Sequence record: MK250027.1
Length of the DNA: 64,000 nt
Direction: 5' to 3' (one strand)
Part shown: piece after piece, positions 3,090 to 36,610 of the stretch
Layout: every line of letters starts with the position of its first letter
Numbering within the stretch: the first letter of the stretch is position 1
The notes under the pieces: model-generated
Seen by the model: the letters and a program-made list of their open reading frames with translations, nothing else
The model's database searches: none
Told to the model about the DNA's origin: nothing
Position numbers and translations under genes: made by a program

Positions 3090-3110
3090 NNNNNNNNNNN
3101 NNNNNNNNNN
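3090..3110. other. Assembly gap (21 N)
   Basis: Run of N. Confidence 1.
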
Positions 3111-3126
3111 TAATGTATTTTAAAAA

Positions 3127-4785
3127 TTAATTACGTTCTACAGCTTGTACGGCATTACTAGCTTTTTCTATTTCTGCTGGCATTCCTAAATTATTTTCAG
3201 ACGGTTTATCATTACCTTTAGTTTCGTCTTTATCGTTCTATATTTCTCCGTTATTATTTTTATATAATGAATCTGCTAAATCTTTTAATGTTGCGTCTGT
3301 ACCCATTTTCTTTTCTATATACTTATGTGCTTTATCTATTAAATTTTCTGTATTATTCTATTCATCTTCAAATAAGTATATATCATTATTTCTAAAATAT
3401 AAAACAGATTCTATTTTTATTTTACTTATAAAATACATTAAACTATAAAACATTGATAACCCATCATAAGGTTTATCATTTGAAATATAATCTAATATAG
3501 TTTTATATATATCAAATATATTTAACGAACCATCTATTACTTTAAACTATTTAAAAAATGATAAAATTTCTTTATTATCATTACTTAATAACAATTTAAA
3601 TGATTTAAAGAAACTATTATCTTTATTAATTATTTGAATTTTTAAACTATTTAAATTTATATTGAATAGATCTTGTAATTCATTAATAATATGTTCACCT
3701 ATACTTAGATTATCTTTCTCTCCATTTGTTGTATCATGACCATCTAACGTTTTTATATTTGTATAAAATAATTTAAATATTTCTTTACATAATATAGTTG
3801 TTGTCTACAATTTATTTGTTTTTTCATCTTTACCTATAACAACAGTTACTTTTGATGTATTTAATGTTTCCTTAATTTCATTTATACTATCTTCCAAATT
3901 TTCAGATTTTTCATTTAATGATAATAACGTATCTGATAATAATGTATTCCATTTTGTAAACTATTCATTAGTTATTACATCTAAATTCTATATATTTTCT
4001 AAGAATTTACTTACTGTTAATTTATCGGTTTTAAATACATCTTTATCCACATCAATCTGTTTTTTAAGGAATACATCTTTAATACCTTCTTTTATATCTA
4101 TATTTGAAATATTCTATTTGAAATAATCTATATATTCTTGTTCATCATCTTTTTTTAATAATTCTAATAATGTTGAATATATATCTTTATAACGCTATGT
4201 ATTTATATTATCCTATACATCTTTATTACCTAATGTATTATATATATTAATTGGAACTTCAAACTATGAAAATTTATCATCAATTAATTTATTATAATAT
4301 GAACTGAAATTATTAGAAAAAATAAATTGTAATATACTTATTAACGTTTTTTGAGAAATCATATTATTAAATGTATCAATAAACTATTTCATTTCATCAT
4401 CAGTTATTGGTTCAATATTATATAATTTATCTTTATCGATTTCTGTAGTTTCATTCTATATAATATATTTTATTATAGTTTTATATGATATATTTGAAAT
4501 ATCATTTTGACTTAACTATATATTATTTTTAAATATATCATTTTCTATAATTTGTGAAATTTTTTCATTTATTAAATTATTTGGTTCTAAGTAAATATTT
4601 AATGGCGTTATTCCACATTTTCTTAAAAACTAATTTAATTTAATTGCCTTATTTTTTATATCTGCATTTGTATTGTTATCATCATTTAATTCATTTATAA
4701 TATTACTAAATTCATTGAATAAATCAGTTGATAACATATTATGATACACCACATTATATATTATATTATCTATTTGCTATAACAT
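3127..4785 (-). CDS. Hypothetical protein, 552 aa (TAG=Gln)
   Basis: ATG 4785 (MLQQIDNIIYNVVYH) to TAA 3127; length divisible by 3; absent from the track because of frequent TAGs. Confidence 0.7.
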
Positions 4786-9555: not shown

Positions 9556-9586
9556 TAAAATAAATACTTAAACATATATCTGATAT

Positions 9587-10579
9587 ATGAAATTTATACA
9601 TAACCTACATGAATAGAATAATATATTATCATATAACGAAATATTAAATACTATTAATAATATTAATGAAGAATATCATGAAGTAACAAATTTTGATAAT
9701 ATGATAAAAGATGTTGCTAAACAAATATATTATTCTAATTATACTGATTTTTATACAGGTTGGAATTGGTTTATTAATGAACAAACATGTTTAAAAGTTA
9801 ATACAGAATATAAATCTGATAATACTGTTTATAAAGATAATATAGGTTGTCCTATATATATTAAATTTGATGATTTAGAAAACAATACGTATTTTGCTGT
9901 ATAGATGAGAGATAATACATATAACATACCTATATATGTTAACAAACATTATAACTTATCTATATAGCAATATGCATATAAATTAAAACATGAAATTACA
10001 CATATACGTACAATGTATTCTAAAATAGATTCAAATCCTTTAGATTCATTAAAGAATAGATCATCAAGTATTGAATTGGATAATATAAAATTAATAAATA
10101 ATAAACAATTTCCATTTATATATAATGTTTGTTATTTATTATCACCAACTGAATAGCAAGCACGTATAAATGAATATATATTTTTTATAAAAGATTATTT
10201 AAAAGAAAATGATATAGATAATGTAAACAGTCATAAATTAATAAATGAATTAATTGAAAAAGGATATGAACATACATTATTAAAAGATTTCTTTGATATA
10301 TATGAAAAATTAGAATTTATGGTAAATGCTTAGATTTATATATAGGTAATATCATTAGGATATGTGTTATAGAAATATAATTTATTTAAATCTAATATAA
10401 CAGATGCAGATTTACTGAGATTAGAATCTGATAGAACAGGAATGATATATAAGTATATTAAATCAGATGAAGATAATTCATATAAAATATTAGAGTTTTT
10501 AAAATAGAATTTATCTGATTACTATACAAAATTAAAAAACGTAACATACAAAACATTAAAAGAAAATAACATAATTTAA
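9587..10579 (+). CDS. HExxH metallopeptidase-like protein, paralog 1, 330 aa (TAG=Gln)
   Basis: ATG 9587 to TAA 10577-10579 through several TAGs; LKHEITH...SPTEQQAR. Confidence 0.7.
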
Positions 10580-10585
10580 TTATAT

Positions 10586-11059
10586 ATGAAGACTAATTTA
10601 AATGGTGGTTGTTTATTGCCAAATGAAGAAATTATTGTAAAGGATGGACTTGTATTGATGTCTGAAATTAAAGTAGGTGATAAAGTTTTATCACATGATG
10701 GTGATTACCATGAAGTAGAACATATATGGAATTTTGAGAAACCTACATACTATGTATCACTTTCAAACGGTGATCATATCGAATGTTCAAATACACATAG
10801 ATTCTTGGTAAATAAGAATAAGATTGAGAAGGAATCATCATGGAAAACTGCAGAAGAACTTCATGATGGAGATGAGATTTTCCAAATGAATCTCATTAAT
10901 ATTGATCCAAATGAGAAGATTAAATTTAATAAGTTGAAGATTGCCCGAATTTTCAAATCAGGAATTAATAATCCTGTGGTTGACATTACAGTAAAAGATA
11001 CACATACATATATCTCTGCGAACGGTATTGTCAATCATAATTCAGGATCTAATTTCTAA
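10586..11059 (+). CDS. Free-standing mini-intein (Hint domain) with minimal exteins
   Basis: MKTNLNGG|CLLPNEEI (block A), CSNTHRFL (block B, TxxH), VVDITVKDTHTYISANGIVNHN|SGSNF (blocks F/G with His-Asn-Ser); no endonuclease domain. Confidence 0.9.
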   Translation: MKTNLNGGCLLPNEEIIVKDGLVLMSEIKVGDKVLSHDGDYHEVEHIWNFEKPTYYVSLSNGDHIECSNTHRFLVNKNKIEKESSWKTAEELHDGDEIFQMNLINIDPNEKIKFNKLKIARIFKSGINNPVVDITVKDTHTYISANGIVNHNSGSNF

Positions 11060-11463
11060 TGGATTATAAAAATACATATTTAAAACCAGAAATTGCTTTT
11101 CTTCTCAAAAAACATCATTATGATATTTCAAAAACTAGATATATGATTAACAGGGATGGTGTGATAATTGAGTCTACCCCTGATTTAGATAAACATTATA
11201 ATCATCTTGAACTTGCATATAATCCTAACGCAAATGAAGTAATTAATTATTTTAAATCAAAAGGAATAATTATTCATATAAATGAAATAAAAGAAAATAA
11301 ATGGGAATGGATTATAACATTCAATAATAATGATAAAGCAATATATTCTGGTGAAACAGCAAATGGAAATTTAGGGCATAATCTTCCGGAATCACGACAA
11401 TATTTCAATAATGAAATAGATGCATATAACGATTGCATAATTGAATTAATAATTATAATTTAA
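11059..11463 (+). CDS. Hypothetical phage protein, probable paralog of 13026..13421
   Basis: TAATG coupling to the intein gene; YLKPEIAFLLKK resembles LVTNEIFEWLLN, and the C-termini are similar. Confidence 0.7.
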   Translation: MDYKNTYLKPEIAFLLKKHHYDISKTRYMINRDGVIIESTPDLDKHYNHLELAYNPNANEVINYFKSKGIIIHINEIKENKWEWIITFNNNDKAIYSGETANGNLGHNLPESRQYFNNEIDAYNDCIIELIIII

Positions 11464-11471
11464 AACAATAT

Positions 11472-11504
11472 GAGACTATAGAAATAAACTATAGTCTCTT
11501 TTTT
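11472..11504 (+). terminator. Intrinsic terminator
   Basis: GAGACTATAG-loop-CTATAGTCTC followed by a T run. Confidence 0.85.
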
Positions 11505-11510
11505 ATTTAA

Positions 11511-11530
11511 AATAAAAATATGTATCTTTG
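11511..11530 (+). promoter_or_regulatory. Bacteroidota-type -7 promoter element (TAnnTTTG), early-type
   Basis: AATAAAAATATGTATCTTTG upstream of the cca gene; nearly identical motifs at 30013 and 35876. Confidence 0.65.
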
Positions 11531-11549
11531 AAAAATAAAAAGAATAATT

Positions 11550-12821
11550 ATGGATAATAAAACATATTTAGTAATAAAAGATTATCTACGTATCATAATT
11601 AAAGATACTGAATTTGAAGATAATTTATTTGCTGTTGGTGGATGTTGTAGAGATGAAATCCTCGGTAATGATATTAAAGATTTAGATCTTGTTGTATCAC
11701 TTAATAATGGCGGTATTAAATTTGCAGAATGGTTAGAGAAAAATCATTATACAAAAGGAACCATTGTAACATATCCTCGTTTTGGAACTGCAATGTTTAG
11801 ACTTAAAGATTTTCCAGATGAAGAATTAGAAGTTGTTCAAACAAGAACAGAAATTTATAATTCAGATTCAAGAAAACCAACTACAACATATGGAAGTCTT
11901 AAAGAAGACTGTATGCGTCGAGATTTAACTATCAATGCAATTTATTATGATATATCAAACAGTAAAATGATTGATGTATGTGGTAGGTCATTTGATGATA
12001 TTAAAAATAAAGTAATTGTTACTCCATGTGACCCTGATAAAACATATATTGATGATCCTCTTAGAATTATGAGGTGTATTAGGTTCTCATGTAAGTTAGG
12101 TTGGGATATTGATAAAAATGTATTTGAAAGTATGAAAAGAAATGTAGATAGATTATCTATTATTTCAAAAGAAAGAATTAAAGATGAAGTTATGAAAATC
12201 TTTAAGTCTAATAATACGTTAAAAGGATTATGTTATATTAGAGATATTAATGCGATGAAATATATATTTCCTAATATGAGTATGTATTGTGGACCTACAT
12301 GTATTGAAAATAATTTTAAAAATATTGATACATTAAAAGATCCATATGTAAAACTTACTGTATTTAATCATAGTAATCCTGATTTAGATAAACAATTATA
12401 TGAACTTAAATTTTCAACTAATGAAATAAGAATTATTCTTAATTATATAAAATTATTTAACTATTCTATACATTGTAATACATTAAGTGATATTAGAGAA
12501 ATTCTTTATCTTTGTAAATCAAAAGACGTATTTAACAATGTATATGATATGTATAAAGTTATAGGATTTCATAAAAGATATATTGAATATGCGCATAATA
12601 ATATAGATACAGATGAATCATTATCTATAATGTTTAAATATAAGTTTCCTTTAAATGGTAATGATATTATGAATATATTTGATATTCATCCAAGTCCTGA
12701 AGTTAAAGAACTTATAGATAAGATGCATGAGTTTGTATATGAGAATCCATATCTTACAAAAGATGAACTTATTGAAAAGTTAAAAATATATAAAGAAACA
12801 AAATCTGATGAACAATGGTAA
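11550..12821 (+). CDS. cca: CCA-adding tRNA nucleotidyltransferase (class II / PolyA_pol family)
   Basis: VGGCCRD..DLDL, RRDLTINA and DDPLRIMRCIRF motifs; TAG-free. Confidence 0.9.
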   Translation: MDNKTYLVIKDYLRIIIKDTEFEDNLFAVGGCCRDEILGNDIKDLDLVVSLNNGGIKFAEWLEKNHYTKGTIVTYPRFGTAMFRLKDFPDEELEVVQTRTEIYNSDSRKPTTTYGSLKEDCMRRDLTINAIYYDISNSKMIDVCGRSFDDIKNKVIVTPCDPDKTYIDDPLRIMRCIRFSCKLGWDIDKNVFESMKRNVDRLSIISKERIKDEVMKIFKSNNTLKGLCYIRDINAMKYIFPNMSMYCGPTCIENNFKNIDTLKDPYVKLTVFNHSNPDLDKQLYELKFSTNEIRIILNYIKLFNYSIHCNTLSDIREILYLCKSKDVFNNVYDMYKVIGFHKRYIEYAHNNIDTDESLSIMFKYKFPLNGNDIMNIFDIHPSPEVKELIDKMHEFVYENPYLTKDELIEKLKIYKETKSDEQW

Positions 12822-12870
12822 TATTTACCATTATAATAAAAAGAATTATTAACTAAAATATATAAGAATT

Positions 12871-13020
12871 ATGAATTTAAATATTTCTCAAAGAGAAGGA
12901 ATTAAGAAGTGCCTTTATCAAGATTTGAAAAAGATGTATGATGCATTTATTCAAACTGATAAGAATGAAGTGGAAAAAGTGTTTAATGAATTTATTGATA
13001 AATGTGAACGTTATATTTAA
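12871..13020 (+). CDS. Small hypothetical protein, 49 aa
   Basis: MNLNISQREGIKKCLYQDLKKMYDAF... fills the operon gap; below the track length cutoff. Confidence 0.55.
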   Translation: MNLNISQREGIKKCLYQDLKKMYDAFIQTDKNEVEKVFNEFIDKCERYI

Positions 13021-13025
13021 TAATT

Positions 13026-13421
13026 ATGACATATTTTCAAAATTTAGTTACAAACGAAATATTTGAATGGTTATTGAATAATAAATTTCCTGCTGTCATA
13101 TGTTTTTATAATCATGGAAAGGAACAACTTTATTATACATTACCATATACAGATCCAAATTGGCAAAATTGCGATGCTTATTATAAACCAACATATTTTG
13201 ATGTATTACATTGGTTATTTAAAGAATATAATTTATATATCAATATAAATTCATATAATAATAAATTTTCAGTTCAAATTGAATATTTAACTAATCATAA
13301 AAATAAGTATTTTGGTAATTGCTGGGAAATTGGAGCGAATTGTAAAACTATTGAAGATTGTATTAAATCTGCAATAGAATATATTATTAAATGTGATATT
13401 TTAAATAAAATTAAATCATGA
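13026..13421 (+). CDS. Hypothetical phage protein
   Basis: Track ORF in a co-oriented operon; ATGA overlap with the next gene. Confidence 0.7.
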   Translation: MTYFQNLVTNEIFEWLLNNKFPAVICFYNHGKEQLYYTLPYTDPNWQNCDAYYKPTYFDVLHWLFKEYNLYININSYNNKFSVQIEYLTNHKNKYFGNCWEIGANCKTIEDCIKSAIEYIIKCDILNKIKS

Positions 13422-13606
13422 AATATATTAGGAAAGGACATATAGTAATATGTGACAATTGCGGTGCACATGTTCTCATTGAAAGTAAAAAGAAAGATAC
13501 TCATATGGACCATAATTGGAATCATACAAAGTATCTTCGTTATTTTACTTGTCCATGTTGTGGTGATGAAGTATATGCAGAATATCCTGAAGATGATCAA
13601 AATTAA
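13418..13606 (+). CDS. Small zinc-ribbon protein
   Basis: CDNCG...CPCCG; ATGA coupling. Confidence 0.7.
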   Translation: MKYIRKGHIVICDNCGAHVLIESKKKDTHMDHNWNHTKYLRYFTCPCCGDEVYAEYPEDDQN

Positions 13607-14145
13607 GTTAATGGTGAAAATAATTCTTTTTGCTCATTAATATATTTTTTAGCTTCTGGTAAATTATCAAATAATATATCATTCTCATCAGGTTGACAAT
13701 ATACCATATTGCCATTATCTTCTATTATATAGATTACACCAAATGGGTCTACCATCTGGGATGGTTCAATAGGTTTACTAAATATTATTTTCCTGATAGA
13801 ATTATCAACGATAACATAATATACATTTGCATTTGCGTCTATATTATCAGACCATTTACCTATGTAATTTATTTTATCATCATATGATGAAAGATTATTA
13901 TCCATTATATTATCGCCAAAAAATGATGCAAGATAATTATTATTTTGATTTACCTTATCTTGATTATCTCTTATTAGAAATTCAGATGTTAAATTAATTG
14001 ACGACTTATGATCATCTGGTATAAATATACCACCTATTACAATATCATCAAACTCATCTGAATCTTCTGTAGGATTTAACATCATATCACCTATATTTTT
14101 TAATTTTGGAATATATTTATGTTGAAGTTTGTAAGTATATTTCAT
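13603..14145 (-). CDS. Hypothetical protein, inverted relative to its neighbours
   Basis: 180-aa ORF with acidic, protein-like composition; its stop shares TTAA with the convergent gene. Confidence 0.7.
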   Translation of the reverse strand: MKYTYKLQHKYIPKLKNIGDMMLNPTEDSDEFDDIVIGGIFIPDDHKSSINLTSEFLIRDNQDKVNQNNNYLASFFGDNIMDNNLSSYDDKINYIGKWSDNIDANANVYYVIVDNSIRKIIFSKPIEPSQMVDPFGVIYIIEDNGNMVYCQPDENDILFDNLPEAKKYINEQKELFSPLT

Positions 14146-14181
14146 TTAATTTTAATTAATAATCTTTAAATATTTATTATA

Positions 14182-14478
14182 ATGACAATAACATATACAG
14201 CGTTCGATGGTAAAATCTTCGATAATAAAGAAGATTGCGAAAATTATGAAGATAAATTGAAATTACTTAGTGGCACTTATGATATACTTGATAAAATATT
14301 AAATAAACTTTATGGATATAAAGGTACTCTTTGGATTTGTGAAGAAAAAAATGAAATTGAACCACATTGTGGACAAGAATTACCAGGTCCAGGTGATATA
14401 TTATGTACAATTAATAATGAAGATTTAAATACATTATTTGTTATAAAGGGCTTACTTGAAAAATATAAAATTAAGTAA
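14182..14478 (+). CDS. Hypothetical phage protein
   Basis: MTITYTAFDGKIFDNKEDCENYE N-terminus typical of small phage proteins. Confidence 0.7.
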   Translation: MTITYTAFDGKIFDNKEDCENYEDKLKLLSGTYDILDKILNKLYGYKGTLWICEEKNEIEPHCGQELPGPGDILCTINNEDLNTLFVIKGLLEKYKIK

Positions 14479-14480
14479 TA

Positions 14481-14963
14481 ATGGAAACAGCAAGGCAAGT
14501 TATAGATAAAATTAAAAATCTATATATACAATGGTATAAAACGACATTATTTGATTCTACATCTCAAATGGGAATAAATGAACATAATGAATTACTGGAG
14601 TATTCAAAACAACATGTTCATAATTTTAGTATAGCAATGATGGAATTACTTGAACATCCAGATGATATGAATTATCATATTCCTGTAATTTGTTGTTATA
14701 TACTTCAAGAAGATTTTATTAAATTATATGAAAATAAAAAAGATAAATTACCATTAGATGATGATTATTGTTGGGATGAATGTAATTTATGGTTAAATTA
14801 TTTCAAATTAACAAAAAATATTGATTATTATAAAAAGTTTAAAGAATATAAAAAATATATTATATTACAGAGAACTTTAAACTATTTAATCCATTTACAG
14901 ATAAAGATCCAAATATTACATATGAAGAATATCTTAAGAAATGCGAAGATATTGATTCAGTAA
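14481..14963 (+). CDS. Hypothetical protein with a probable frameshift near 14850
   Basis: The -1 frame from 14852 to TGA 15028 (ITENFKLFNPFTDKDPNITYEEYLKKC) looks more protein-like than the annotated tail. Confidence 0.6.
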   Translation: METARQVIDKIKNLYIQWYKTTLFDSTSQMGINEHNELLEYSKQHVHNFSIAMMELLEHPDDMNYHIPVICCYILQEDFIKLYENKKDKLPLDDDYCWDECNLWLNYFKLTKNIDYYKKFKEYKKYIILQRTLNYLIHLQIKIQILHMKNILRNAKILIQ

Positions 14964-15011
14964 ATAAGTTTACAACTAAATTACGTAAAGATAATAATAC
15001 AAAATTAGTAT

Positions 15012-15362
15012 ATGAATACAAGAAATGAATTAAAAAAAATAATGAATGATTCTTTAAAACAAAATAATATCATTGATAAACAAGAGATACCAAATGTAAC
15101 AATACTTCCAGATTTATCAGATCCATCAGAATATAAACGATGGTTTAATATGGGTCCTAAAGAAGCATTGGTAAATCTTCAAAAATATGTGGATTTGAAC
15201 AAGAAAGATAATATTGATTTTATTAAAGATTTCAATTATCTTTATACAAATGGTGGTATTTCTGGTTGGAGTAAAATACCATATAAAACATTCTATAACA
15301 TTATTTATGGTAAACAAAGAGTAGATTTCAATGGTAATTTAACAGGTGATGAAAATAGTTAA
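15012..15362 (+). CDS. Hypothetical protein
   Basis: Track ORF within an operon. Confidence 0.65.
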   Translation: MNTRNELKKIMNDSLKQNNIIDKQEIPNVTILPDLSDPSEYKRWFNMGPKEALVNLQKYVDLNKKDNIDFIKDFNYLYTNGGISGWSKIPYKTFYNIIYGKQRVDFNGNLTGDENS

Positions 15363-15687
15363 ACATATTACTGAAGAACCTGAATATACTGCAGTTAAAT
15401 TAATAACAACTGATTGTTTAGGAATTATCCAATATAGTTTTAATGATAAAGATAATTATGTTTATATTTATAGTTTTTCAGTAGAGAACCATAATAGAGG
15501 TAAACATATAGGAACAGAATTATTTGAATATTGTTTAAATGAAATAAATTCATTAGATAAGAAAGAGATTCATTTAACAGTTAATAAGAATAATATTCAA
15601 TTAATTAATTTTTATAAACGATATGGATTTATAGTAGTTAATGATAATTATGAAGAATATTATGTTTATATGAAGTTAAATCTCTAA
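15349..15687 (+). CDS. GNAT-family acetyltransferase
   Basis: FSVENHNRGKHIGTELF (acetyl-CoA motif A), LTVNKNN and FYKRYGF motifs. Confidence 0.85.
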   Translation: MKIVKHITEEPEYTAVKLITTDCLGIIQYSFNDKDNYVYIYSFSVENHNRGKHIGTELFEYCLNEINSLDKKEIHLTVNKNNIQLINFYKRYGFIVVNDNYEEYYVYMKLNL

Positions 15688-26098: not shown

Positions 26099-26201
26099 NN
26101 NNNNNNNNNNNNNNNNNNNNNNNNNNNNNNNNNNNNNNNNNNNNNNNNNNNNNNNNNNNNNNNNNNNNNNNNNNNNNNNNNNNNNNNNNNNNNNNNNNNN
26201 N
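26099..26201. other. Assembly gap (103 N)
   Basis: Run of N. Confidence 1.
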
Positions 26202-27269: not shown

Positions 27270-27797
27270 TCAAAAGAACTTTGTTTCATTCTCTGTCTAA
27301 TAGAATATCATTATCTATATTTTTCNNNNNNNNNNNNNNNNNNNNNNNNNNNNNNNNNNNNNNNNNNNNNNNNNNNNNNNNNNNNNNNNNNNNNNNNNNN
27401 NNNNNNNNNNNNNNNNNNNNNNNNNNNNNNNNNNNNNNNNNNNNNNNNNNNNNNNNNNNNNNNNNNNNNNNNNNNNNNNNNNNNNNNNNNNNNNNNNNNN
27501 NNNNNNNNNNNNNNNNNNNNNNNNNNNNNNNNNNNNNNNNNNNNNNNNNNNNNNNNNNNNNNNNNNNNNNNNNNNNNNNNNNNNNNNNNNNNNNNNNNNN
27601 NNNNNNNNNNNNNNNNNNNNNNNNNNNNNNNNNNNNNNNNNNNNNNNNNNNNNNNNNNNNNNNNNNNNNNNNNNNNNNNNNNNNNNNNNNNNNNNNNNNN
27701 NNNNNNNNNNNNNNNNNNNNNNNNNNNNNNNNNNNNNNNNNNNNNNNNNNNNNNNNNNNNNNNNNNNNNNNNNNNNNNNNNCGAAAAAAGTCTACAT
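27270..27797 (-). CDS. Hypothetical gene spanning the N gap (about 175 aa)
   Basis: ATG TAG ACT TTT TTC (MQTFF) right of the gap is in frame with EKIQIMIFYQTENETKFF-TGA left of the gap. Confidence 0.45.
27326..27781. other. Assembly gap (456 N)
   Basis: Run of N. Confidence 1.
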
Positions 27798-36508: not shown

Positions 36509-36580
36509 GCATGATTAGCTAAGTGGTACAGCAGGAAACTTTAAACTTCCAGATCACGGGTTCGATCCCTGTATCATGCA
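36509..36580 (+). tRNA. tRNA with anticodon UUA (ochre suppressor-type), no encoded CCA
   Basis: Acceptor GCATGAT/ATCATGC, D arm with GG, anticodon stem GGAAA/CTTCC, loop CT-TTA-AA (TTA at 36541-36543), T arm ACGGG-TTCGATC-CCTGT, discriminator A. Confidence 0.9.
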
Positions 36581-36610
36581 CATCTAAATTTAAAATAAAA
36601 GTATAAAACT

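Follow-up and report, generated by a model that had tools for sequence, protein, structure and literature searches.

Inteins are regarded as purely selfish elements that are conserved because a failed splice ruins the essential host protein in which they reside. In yeast, the HO endonuclease and the WHO elements are domesticated, extein-less inteins of the VDE type (PMC7282813). In the huge gut phages named Jug, stand-alone Intein_splicing ORFs lie between the fragments of interrupted genes, for example nrdD and the DNA polymerase gene, and are therefore pieces of fractured genes (PMC12880540), a term used here as Dassa et al. 2009 defined it (PMC2677866). No description of an orphan or extein-less intein family of the kind reported below was found in the searchable literature; a survey of actinobacteriophage inteins and the paper on the Jug phages deal with different architectures.

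The gene analysed here lies in a window of 64,000 nucleotides (the whole stretch of DNA that was analysed, from record MK250027.1), which contains runs of N at 3090-3110, 26099-26201 and 27326-27781. A first-pass annotation had described it as a free-standing mini-intein preceded by a di-glycine 8-mer, and had proposed that it generates a self-activating peptide tag or acts as a peptide ligase, that it makes a signalling peptide, or that it is an orphaned intein. The comparisons below relate the gene to an intein of the UvsX recombinase and point to selection on the intein domain itself.

Architecture of the stand-alone intein gene

The in-frame TAA codons previously noted at 10577 and 11057 were confirmed as the bounds of the gene (Table 1), as were the flanks MKTNLNGG and SGSNF between them. 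The ORF contains no TAG codon, and the earlier statement that TAG readthrough does not extend it holds for this TAA-bounded frame. Downstream of the closing TAA, the frame is shut again after seven codons. The G+C content of the genome is ~24%, and TAG is clearly recoded as a sense codon: when TAG is allowed as sense, the summed length of the ORFs of at least 100 aa rises from 13,142 to 22,491 aa, and the ORFs become fewer and longer. TAA is a true stop, because it closes 45 of 49 genes, TAG-rich and TAG-poor alike.

A tRNA at 36509..36581 (+; Rfam RF00005, 59.5 bits) has the anticodon loop CUUUAAA with the anticodon UUA. It is predicted to be an ochre (TAA) suppressor and may read TAG by wobble. 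This suppressor-type tRNA coexists with TAG recoding and with TAA termination in 45 of the 49 genes.

Table 1. Coordinates of the features discussed (window positions unless another contig or record is named)
Feature	Location	Strand	Remarks
Stand-alone intein gene	10586..11059	+	ATG at 10586, 157 codons + TAA
In-frame TAA	10577..10579	+	ends upstream gene 9587..10579; ATG 6 nt further on
N-flank MKTNLNGG	10586..10609	+	UvsX N-extein relic; cf. ..VPTNVLAGG| in L001 (tblastn)
Intein (HINT) domain	10610..11041	+	Cys9 to Asn152, 144 aa, endonuclease insert absent
Cys1 codon (Cys9 of the ORF)	10610..10612	+	invariant family-wide in the alignment
Block B	10787..10798	+	S68-N69-T70-H71; His invariant
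Block F	10982..11005	+	D133 to H140, VDITVKDTH; Asp nearly invariant
Block G	11036..11041	+	H151-N152; terminal Asn missing in P0011-P0014
C-flank SGSNF + TAA	11042..11059	+	UvsX C-extein relic; cf. SGIIY.. / SGIVY..
P0003 gene	11059..11463	+	134 aa, unknown fold; start overlaps the intein stop (TAATG)
P0032, P0028	L027 3949..4533; L026 300..875		second kind of extein-less intein
Fractured UvsX of Lak-B4 (L038)	MK250023 527281..530577		outside the window

As first annotated, a complete Hint domain makes up the whole gene, with Cys1, the block F Asp, the terminal His-Asn and the +1 Ser (S153) all present. The TxxH motif ascribed to block B stands as regards its histidine, His71, but the T position is occupied by Ser (SNTH), likewise in gp41-1. 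Comparison with the NCBIfam models gave 24.7 bits for the intein C-terminal region (TIGR01443, cut-off 15.6) and 24.0 bits for the N-terminal region (TIGR01445), slightly below the cut-off of 24.5 (E 5.9e-5). Sequence matches in the PDB are the gp41-1 and Pho RadA inteins, and the BIL domain 2lwy matches only weakly (E 0.17). The AlphaFold2 model (pLDDT 81.6) shows a bare HINT fold. For this model, Foldseek ranks the gp41-1, NpuDnaB, Ssp DnaB and Mtu RecA inteins highest (E 2e-8 to 1e-5), and BIL2 is also among the fold matches. Judged by motifs and predicted fold, the protein is a class-1 mini-intein, far beyond chance. A homing endonuclease (LAGLIDADG) domain is absent from the 144 aa between the intein ends, and the contiguous ORF differs from a split-intein or fractured-gene arrangement.

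Relationship to the inteins of UvsX

An exhaustive profile search showed that, after the stand-alone family itself, the best matches are inteins inserted at GG|SG in UvsX-like proteins (the bar marks the splice junction). The inteins at this site are contiguous in P0027 and P0030 and split in P0029 and P0026. One short hit, the RecA-like protein P0021 of contig L001, terminates with the N-terminal portion of a homologous intein. In this contig, the gene of a UvsX-like recombinase (phrog_97) is fractured into two ORFs by a split intein; the first terminates in ..YVPTNVLAGG|CLIPTEE...NIYILE and a stop codon, and the second opens with MQYRKLKIVKK...IINHN|SGIIYNSS.. The N part of this split intein is 58% identical to the window protein, and the alignment extends into the flanks, (Y)MKTN-LNGG|C and HN|SGSNF aligning with YVPTNVLAGG|C and HN|SGIIY of the intein-bearing UvsX. 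Thus, the di-glycine 8-mer and SGSNF are remnants of the recombinase.

A tree of 74 inteins, obtained by a quick IQ-TREE search, unites the 14 stand-alone proteins in a single clade (SH-aLRT 98). The sister of this clade is the UvsX intein of L001 (support 94), and both lie within the clade of UvsX-site inteins. The nearest relatives of the window protein and its nesting in the tree place it with these inteins rather than with the BIL domains of type A or B. The reading as an orphaned intein, the last of those offered by the first-pass annotation, gains support from the flank alignment, the UvsX-site matches and the tree. These comparisons show, at the level of sequence, that the orphan derives from the intein by which the UvsX/RecA-like recombinase is interrupted at GG|SG in Lak-like megaphages.

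Other unusual arrangements occur among the relatives. The metagenomic proteins P0023 and P0025 are 'middle pieces' from UvsX-like genes with two inteins, which lie 14 residues apart (..SHN|CVGAYVPTNIQSGG|C..), and their ORFs consist of IntC, the 14-aa extein and IntN. P0028 and P0032 are extein-less too and lie elsewhere in the UvsX-site clade. They are composed of a degenerate IntC remnant, a linker and a complete intein that ends in HN|SL and a stop codon; P0032 adjoins a DNA polymerase B gene, and UvsX is absent nearby. Since P0028 and P0032 branch apart from the stand-alone clade, orphaning has occurred more than once.

No UvsX extein was found beside any of the stand-alone copies. Rather than forming an in-frame insertion in a host protein that splicing restores, the window domain is flanked by 8 + 5 residues only, an arrangement that recurs in the 14 homologues and the 15 Lak genomes. 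The complete Lak genomes carry one UvsX-like gene, ~200 kb from the orphan intein. The UvsX of Lak-A1 is intact, with 431 aa and an empty site (..NIQAMG|SGIVYNAS..). In Lak-B4, the first piece of UvsX is a 324-aa ORF terminating in ..NIQAMG|CLRPDEK...EIYAISE and a stop codon, and the last piece reads MMKYRKLKIVKK...IINHN|SGIVYNAS.. Between the intein halves lies a 463-aa ORF of repeated short helical modules, for which no PHROG family was matched. Judged from these genomes, Lak phages are polymorphic for the intein in UvsX. The orphan shares 63% DNA identity with the UvsX IntN of its own genome type, and no long identical tracts that would mark gene conversion between the free and the UvsX copy were found in the Lak-B4 type. 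Thus, the two are old paralogues rather than recent gene-conversion partners.

Contig L016 has an intein-less UvsX (..VSGG|SGIQYNSS..) 630 bp upstream of its stand-alone copy, and homologues of ribosomal protein S21 and translation initiation factor IF1 are encoded between the two (3396..3845). A tblastn search for UvsX in the window returned nothing except the intein itself, and no phrog_97 match was found in the fragmentary relatives G001-G003 (16-76% complete). These absences are misleading, because the complete Lak genomes carry UvsX.

Distribution, conserved residues and selection

Among 5.8 billion proteins searched, at least 14 diverged, full-length homologues likewise stand alone; they measure 149-160 aa and have 57-85% identity. 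The gene is present in 15 of the 15 Prevotella phage Lak genomes in GenBank (A1, A2, B1-B9 and C1; 540-552 kb) with 88.5-100% identity, and the protein is identical (100%) in Lak-B4/B7/B8, the genome type of the window, from baboon faeces. Copies with 89-94% identity occur in IMG/VR on contigs of 314-448 kb. This distribution shows that the intein was already a separate gene before the Lak A/B/C lineages parted, and is so beyond those lineages. The first-pass annotation had allowed for a unique truncation with drifting flanks, derived from homologues inside long genes. The nearest outgroup homologues do lie in long genes, and the flanks do drift; however, by these comparisons the window copy is one of a family rather than a unique truncation, and the family is under purifying selection.

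The window is a recombinant of two lineages. As far as ~10700 it matches the L006 lineage with 99-100% identity, and from ~10900 onwards, at least to the end of the nucleotidyltransferase gene, its identity with the L008 lineage is 100%. The crossover (~10750..10900) falls inside the intein ORF, near the split position of the related UvsX intein.

Alignment of 15 sequences showed that Cys9 and H71 are invariant and that S68 is replaced by Ala in two; the block-F Asp (F:4) is retained (nearly) throughout the family. Residues whose invariance is specific to the clade include the N76-K77-x-K79 loop. The subclade P0011-P0014 no longer has the terminal Asn or the block-F His, and its block-F sequence is changed from DTHTY to DSLTY, DSCTY or GSNTY. 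Another homologue, P0010, carries a frameshift. The two junctions to which the first-pass annotation attached weight are unevenly conserved: HN|S is present in the window copy but lacks its Asn in P0011-P0014, and GG|C is not kept family-wide. The N-flank drifts, with 3-11 residues and no conserved sequence across the 14 stand-alone homologues, of which 11 have Gly and 3 have Asn at position -1. Gly-Gly precedes Cys1 in 7 of the 15 aligned sequences, close relatives only, and the N-flanks of other homologues end in AG, YG, FG, SN, YN or FN. A conserved Gly-Gly cargo, ubiquitin-like or of the BUBL type, was not found upstream of the HINT domain.

Pairwise Nei-Gojobori comparisons of nine stand-alone genes gave dN/dS ratios of 0.09-0.39, those of the deepest pairs being rough because dS is saturated in distant pairs. 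The ratio between L002 and L020, both of the Asn-less subclade, is 0.17. These values show that the stand-alone gene is under purifying selection as a protein. The intein is also the best conserved protein of its neighbourhood in the comparisons made. Against L021, it is 79% identical, compared with 56% for the Dam-type methyltransferase, 50% for the nucleotidyltransferase, 52% for an 878-aa ORF and 27% for P0003; the intein and the methyltransferase are 74% and 53% identical against L003, and 59% and 52% against L002. The intein adjoins the methyltransferase gene in most lineages, which indicates that the divergence happened in the orphan state. The constraint on the Asn-less subclade and the drift of the N-flank indicate that selection needs no complete splicing and ignores the flank peptide. 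We infer that the targets of selection are probably the HINT domain and the residues of the first, thioester-forming step. The conservation of the catalytic residues could be partly inherited, inteins being constrained folds.

Gene neighbourhood and expression

In the window, and likewise in L006-L010, L022-L025, L002 and L021, the intein is followed by a P0003 homologue, and four of these intein-P0003 loci were found independently via P0003 itself. In L003-L005 and L016-L019, P0003 does not follow the intein; this neighbour is missing in three lineages. The P0003 model (pLDDT 91) showed no match to PDB folds, and its matches in the ESM Atlas are phage hypothetical proteins only, plus one HNH_3-fused family (TM 0.53). 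A predicted complex of the intein with P0003 scored 0.00, which counts neither way. No PHROG families were found for P0002 and P0003. A paralogue of P0003 lies at 13026..13421 (+), ~2 kb downstream of it (HMM E 2e-30). No conjugation or recognition partner was found in the conserved neighbourhood.

From 10586 to 15687, the window has a run of consecutive TAG-free genes, including the intein gene, P0003, the nucleotidyltransferase gene and others, and the genes flanking this block have 8 TAG codons each. The block fits a separation of temporal gene classes by TAG recoding. The intein ORF is covered by contigs of two metatranscriptome libraries, an observation that documents presence only, since DNA carry-over is possible.

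Possible roles of the orphan intein

The gene encodes an extein-less, orphan class-1 mini-intein of UvsX descent that is under selection, and we consider it probable that it has been exapted for a phage function. The 157-aa product would fold as a HINT domain and make an N-S acyl shift at Gly8-Cys9, where thioester formation is plausible chemistry. No splicing residue is missing from the window copy, so that it is probably able to release the two vestigial flanks, which correspond to ~9 and ~5 residues of the UvsX recombinase. Their release would leave a HINT domain of 144 aa that starts with Cys, plus a trivial 13-mer. The selected entity would then be the HINT domain itself, through its Cys1 and block-B chemistry or through a binding surface, rather than the flanking peptide or complete splicing. 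The domain may be exapted for a phage function and expressed within the block of TAG-free genes. Its universal presence in the sequenced Lak megaphages, under purifying selection, suggests that it has its own job. Tentatively, the protein might be a domesticated bare HINT domain kept by the virus for its own benefit, which would direct thioester chemistry or an exposed Cys at other targets, or act on the split-intein/endonuclease element of UvsX.

Selection on the splicing residues could also arise elsewhere, if the gene were a parked reservoir of the UvsX intein that occasionally re-invades an intein-less UvsX and is selected for splicing there. The window copy retains all splicing residues, and at positions -1, +1 and +2 it still matches the UvsX site (Gly, Ser and Gly); that site is empty in Lak-A1 and occupied in Lak-B4, an intein-less UvsX lies close to the stand-alone copy in L016, and recombination does occur within the intein gene. 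However, the stand-alone copies form one well-supported clade that is not interleaved with the embedded ones, and the free and the UvsX copy of one genome type have diverged to 63% DNA identity without conversion tracts. The homology in the flanks spans only ~25 nt and 15 nt and is drifting, an endonuclease is encoded neither within the gene nor adjoining it, and the subclade that lacks the Asn and the block-F His is still constrained. We therefore regard such a reservoir as unlikely. Lower still we place the proposal that headed the first-pass annotation, in which the 8-mer becomes a Gly-Gly thioester and is joined to targets, either in the manner of a ubiquitin-like tag or through peptide ligation, or a signalling peptide is released. 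The invariant Cys1 and block-B His would suit this chemistry, the Asn-less subclade would stall at the thioester or at N-cleavage, and cargo-transferring HINT domains do exist in Hedgehog and BIL/BUBL proteins, BIL2 being among the fold matches. However, the putative tag is too short for a ubiquitin-like fold, is accounted for as a decaying UvsX extein, varies in length and sequence across the 14 homologues with Gly-Gly in close relatives only, and has no conjugation or recognition partner in the conserved neighbourhood. The spliced-peptide variant fails, as splicing is impossible for four cluster representatives in which the terminal Asn is absent.

A neutral relic, that is, a dead intein left by a rearrangement and heading for loss, would explain why there are no exteins to rescue, why the flanks drift, why some copies lack the terminal Asn and why P0010 is frameshifted. 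It is very improbable given that the ORF is intact in each lineage down to 57% identity in a genome of 24% GC, that the dN/dS ratios are low (0.09-0.39), that the protein is conserved above the adjacent methyltransferase and nucleotidyltransferase, and that all 15 Lak genomes carry it. We give least credence to the notion that the gene is not stand-alone at all and that read-through of the TAA at 10577 by the UUA tRNA fuses the intein to the upstream protein. In the window, the upstream gene (9587..10579, +), which is TAG-rich and encodes a protein of 330 aa without a known family, shares the reading frame of the intein, and only the TAA and two codons separate them. However, the relative frame differs in L008, the gene is an indel between the Dam-type methyltransferase gene and the intein that is absent in L023, L002, L003 and L020, and contigs of runs X15 and X17 skip it by joining 9602 to 10513 or 9584 to 10537. 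The shared frame is thus an accident, since it differs in L008 and the gene is missing in many relatives. The frame also closes soon after the intein, and TAA is the usual terminator of the genome. The comparative frames and the absence of the ORF in relatives lead us to reject the read-through fusion. Exaptation of an orphan UvsX intein is the explanation that we retain.

Comparison with known systems

The locus presents a complete mini-intein without a host protein that is universal in a clade of gut megaphages of 540-552 kb and retains its N-terminal catalytic residues. If exapted, it would be a natural case of HINT chemistry in a new role without cargo or endonuclease, and, if the domesticated-HINT reading is true, the first mini-intein that a virus retains for its own benefit. 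The same genome group also offers a single intein lineage for comparison in three forms, namely embedded, split and orphan. The family consists of compact natural mini-inteins that tolerate minimal flanks, and may be of use to protein engineers.

The closest relative by sequence, and the sister in the tree, is the fractured UvsX intein of the Lak-B type (L001; Lak-B4 MK250023 ~527.2-529.8 kb). It shares the -1 Gly, the +1 Ser, the +2 Gly, the block motifs and the phage group with the orphan, and in Lak-B4 both lie in one genome. However, the UvsX intein is split and resides in a full-length recombinase, with the 463-aa ORF between its halves in Lak-B4, whereas the orphan is contiguous, has no host protein and lies ~200 kb away. 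The gp41-1, NpuDnaB and Pho RadA inteins have the fold, the size and the catalytic residues in common with the orphan; they reside within essential proteins and are conserved via selection for splicing, whereas the orphan would join just 13 residues. The ORFs of the Jug phages resemble it in belonging to huge gut phages and in being called as separate intein-domain ORFs, but the Lak gene has no adjoining host-gene fragments. The BIL, BUBL and Hedgehog HINT domains perform N-terminal thioester chemistry without splicing, to which the Asn-less subclade is similar on paper. However, they carry a real N-terminal cargo domain, whereas the 'cargo' of the orphan family is 3-11 unconserved residues, and by descent the orphan belongs to the UvsX clade of inteins rather than to the BIL or Hog domains. 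The nearest precedent for a selected, extein-less gene derived from an intein is yeast HO (PMC7282813). HO and the WHO elements resemble the orphan in that an intein-derived protein is encoded by its own extein-less gene and maintained by selection. However, HO acts via its LAGLIDADG endonuclease and zinc-finger parts, whereas in the Lak phages the protein is no more than a HINT domain of 144 aa, which lacks an endonuclease and has its splicing residues complete.
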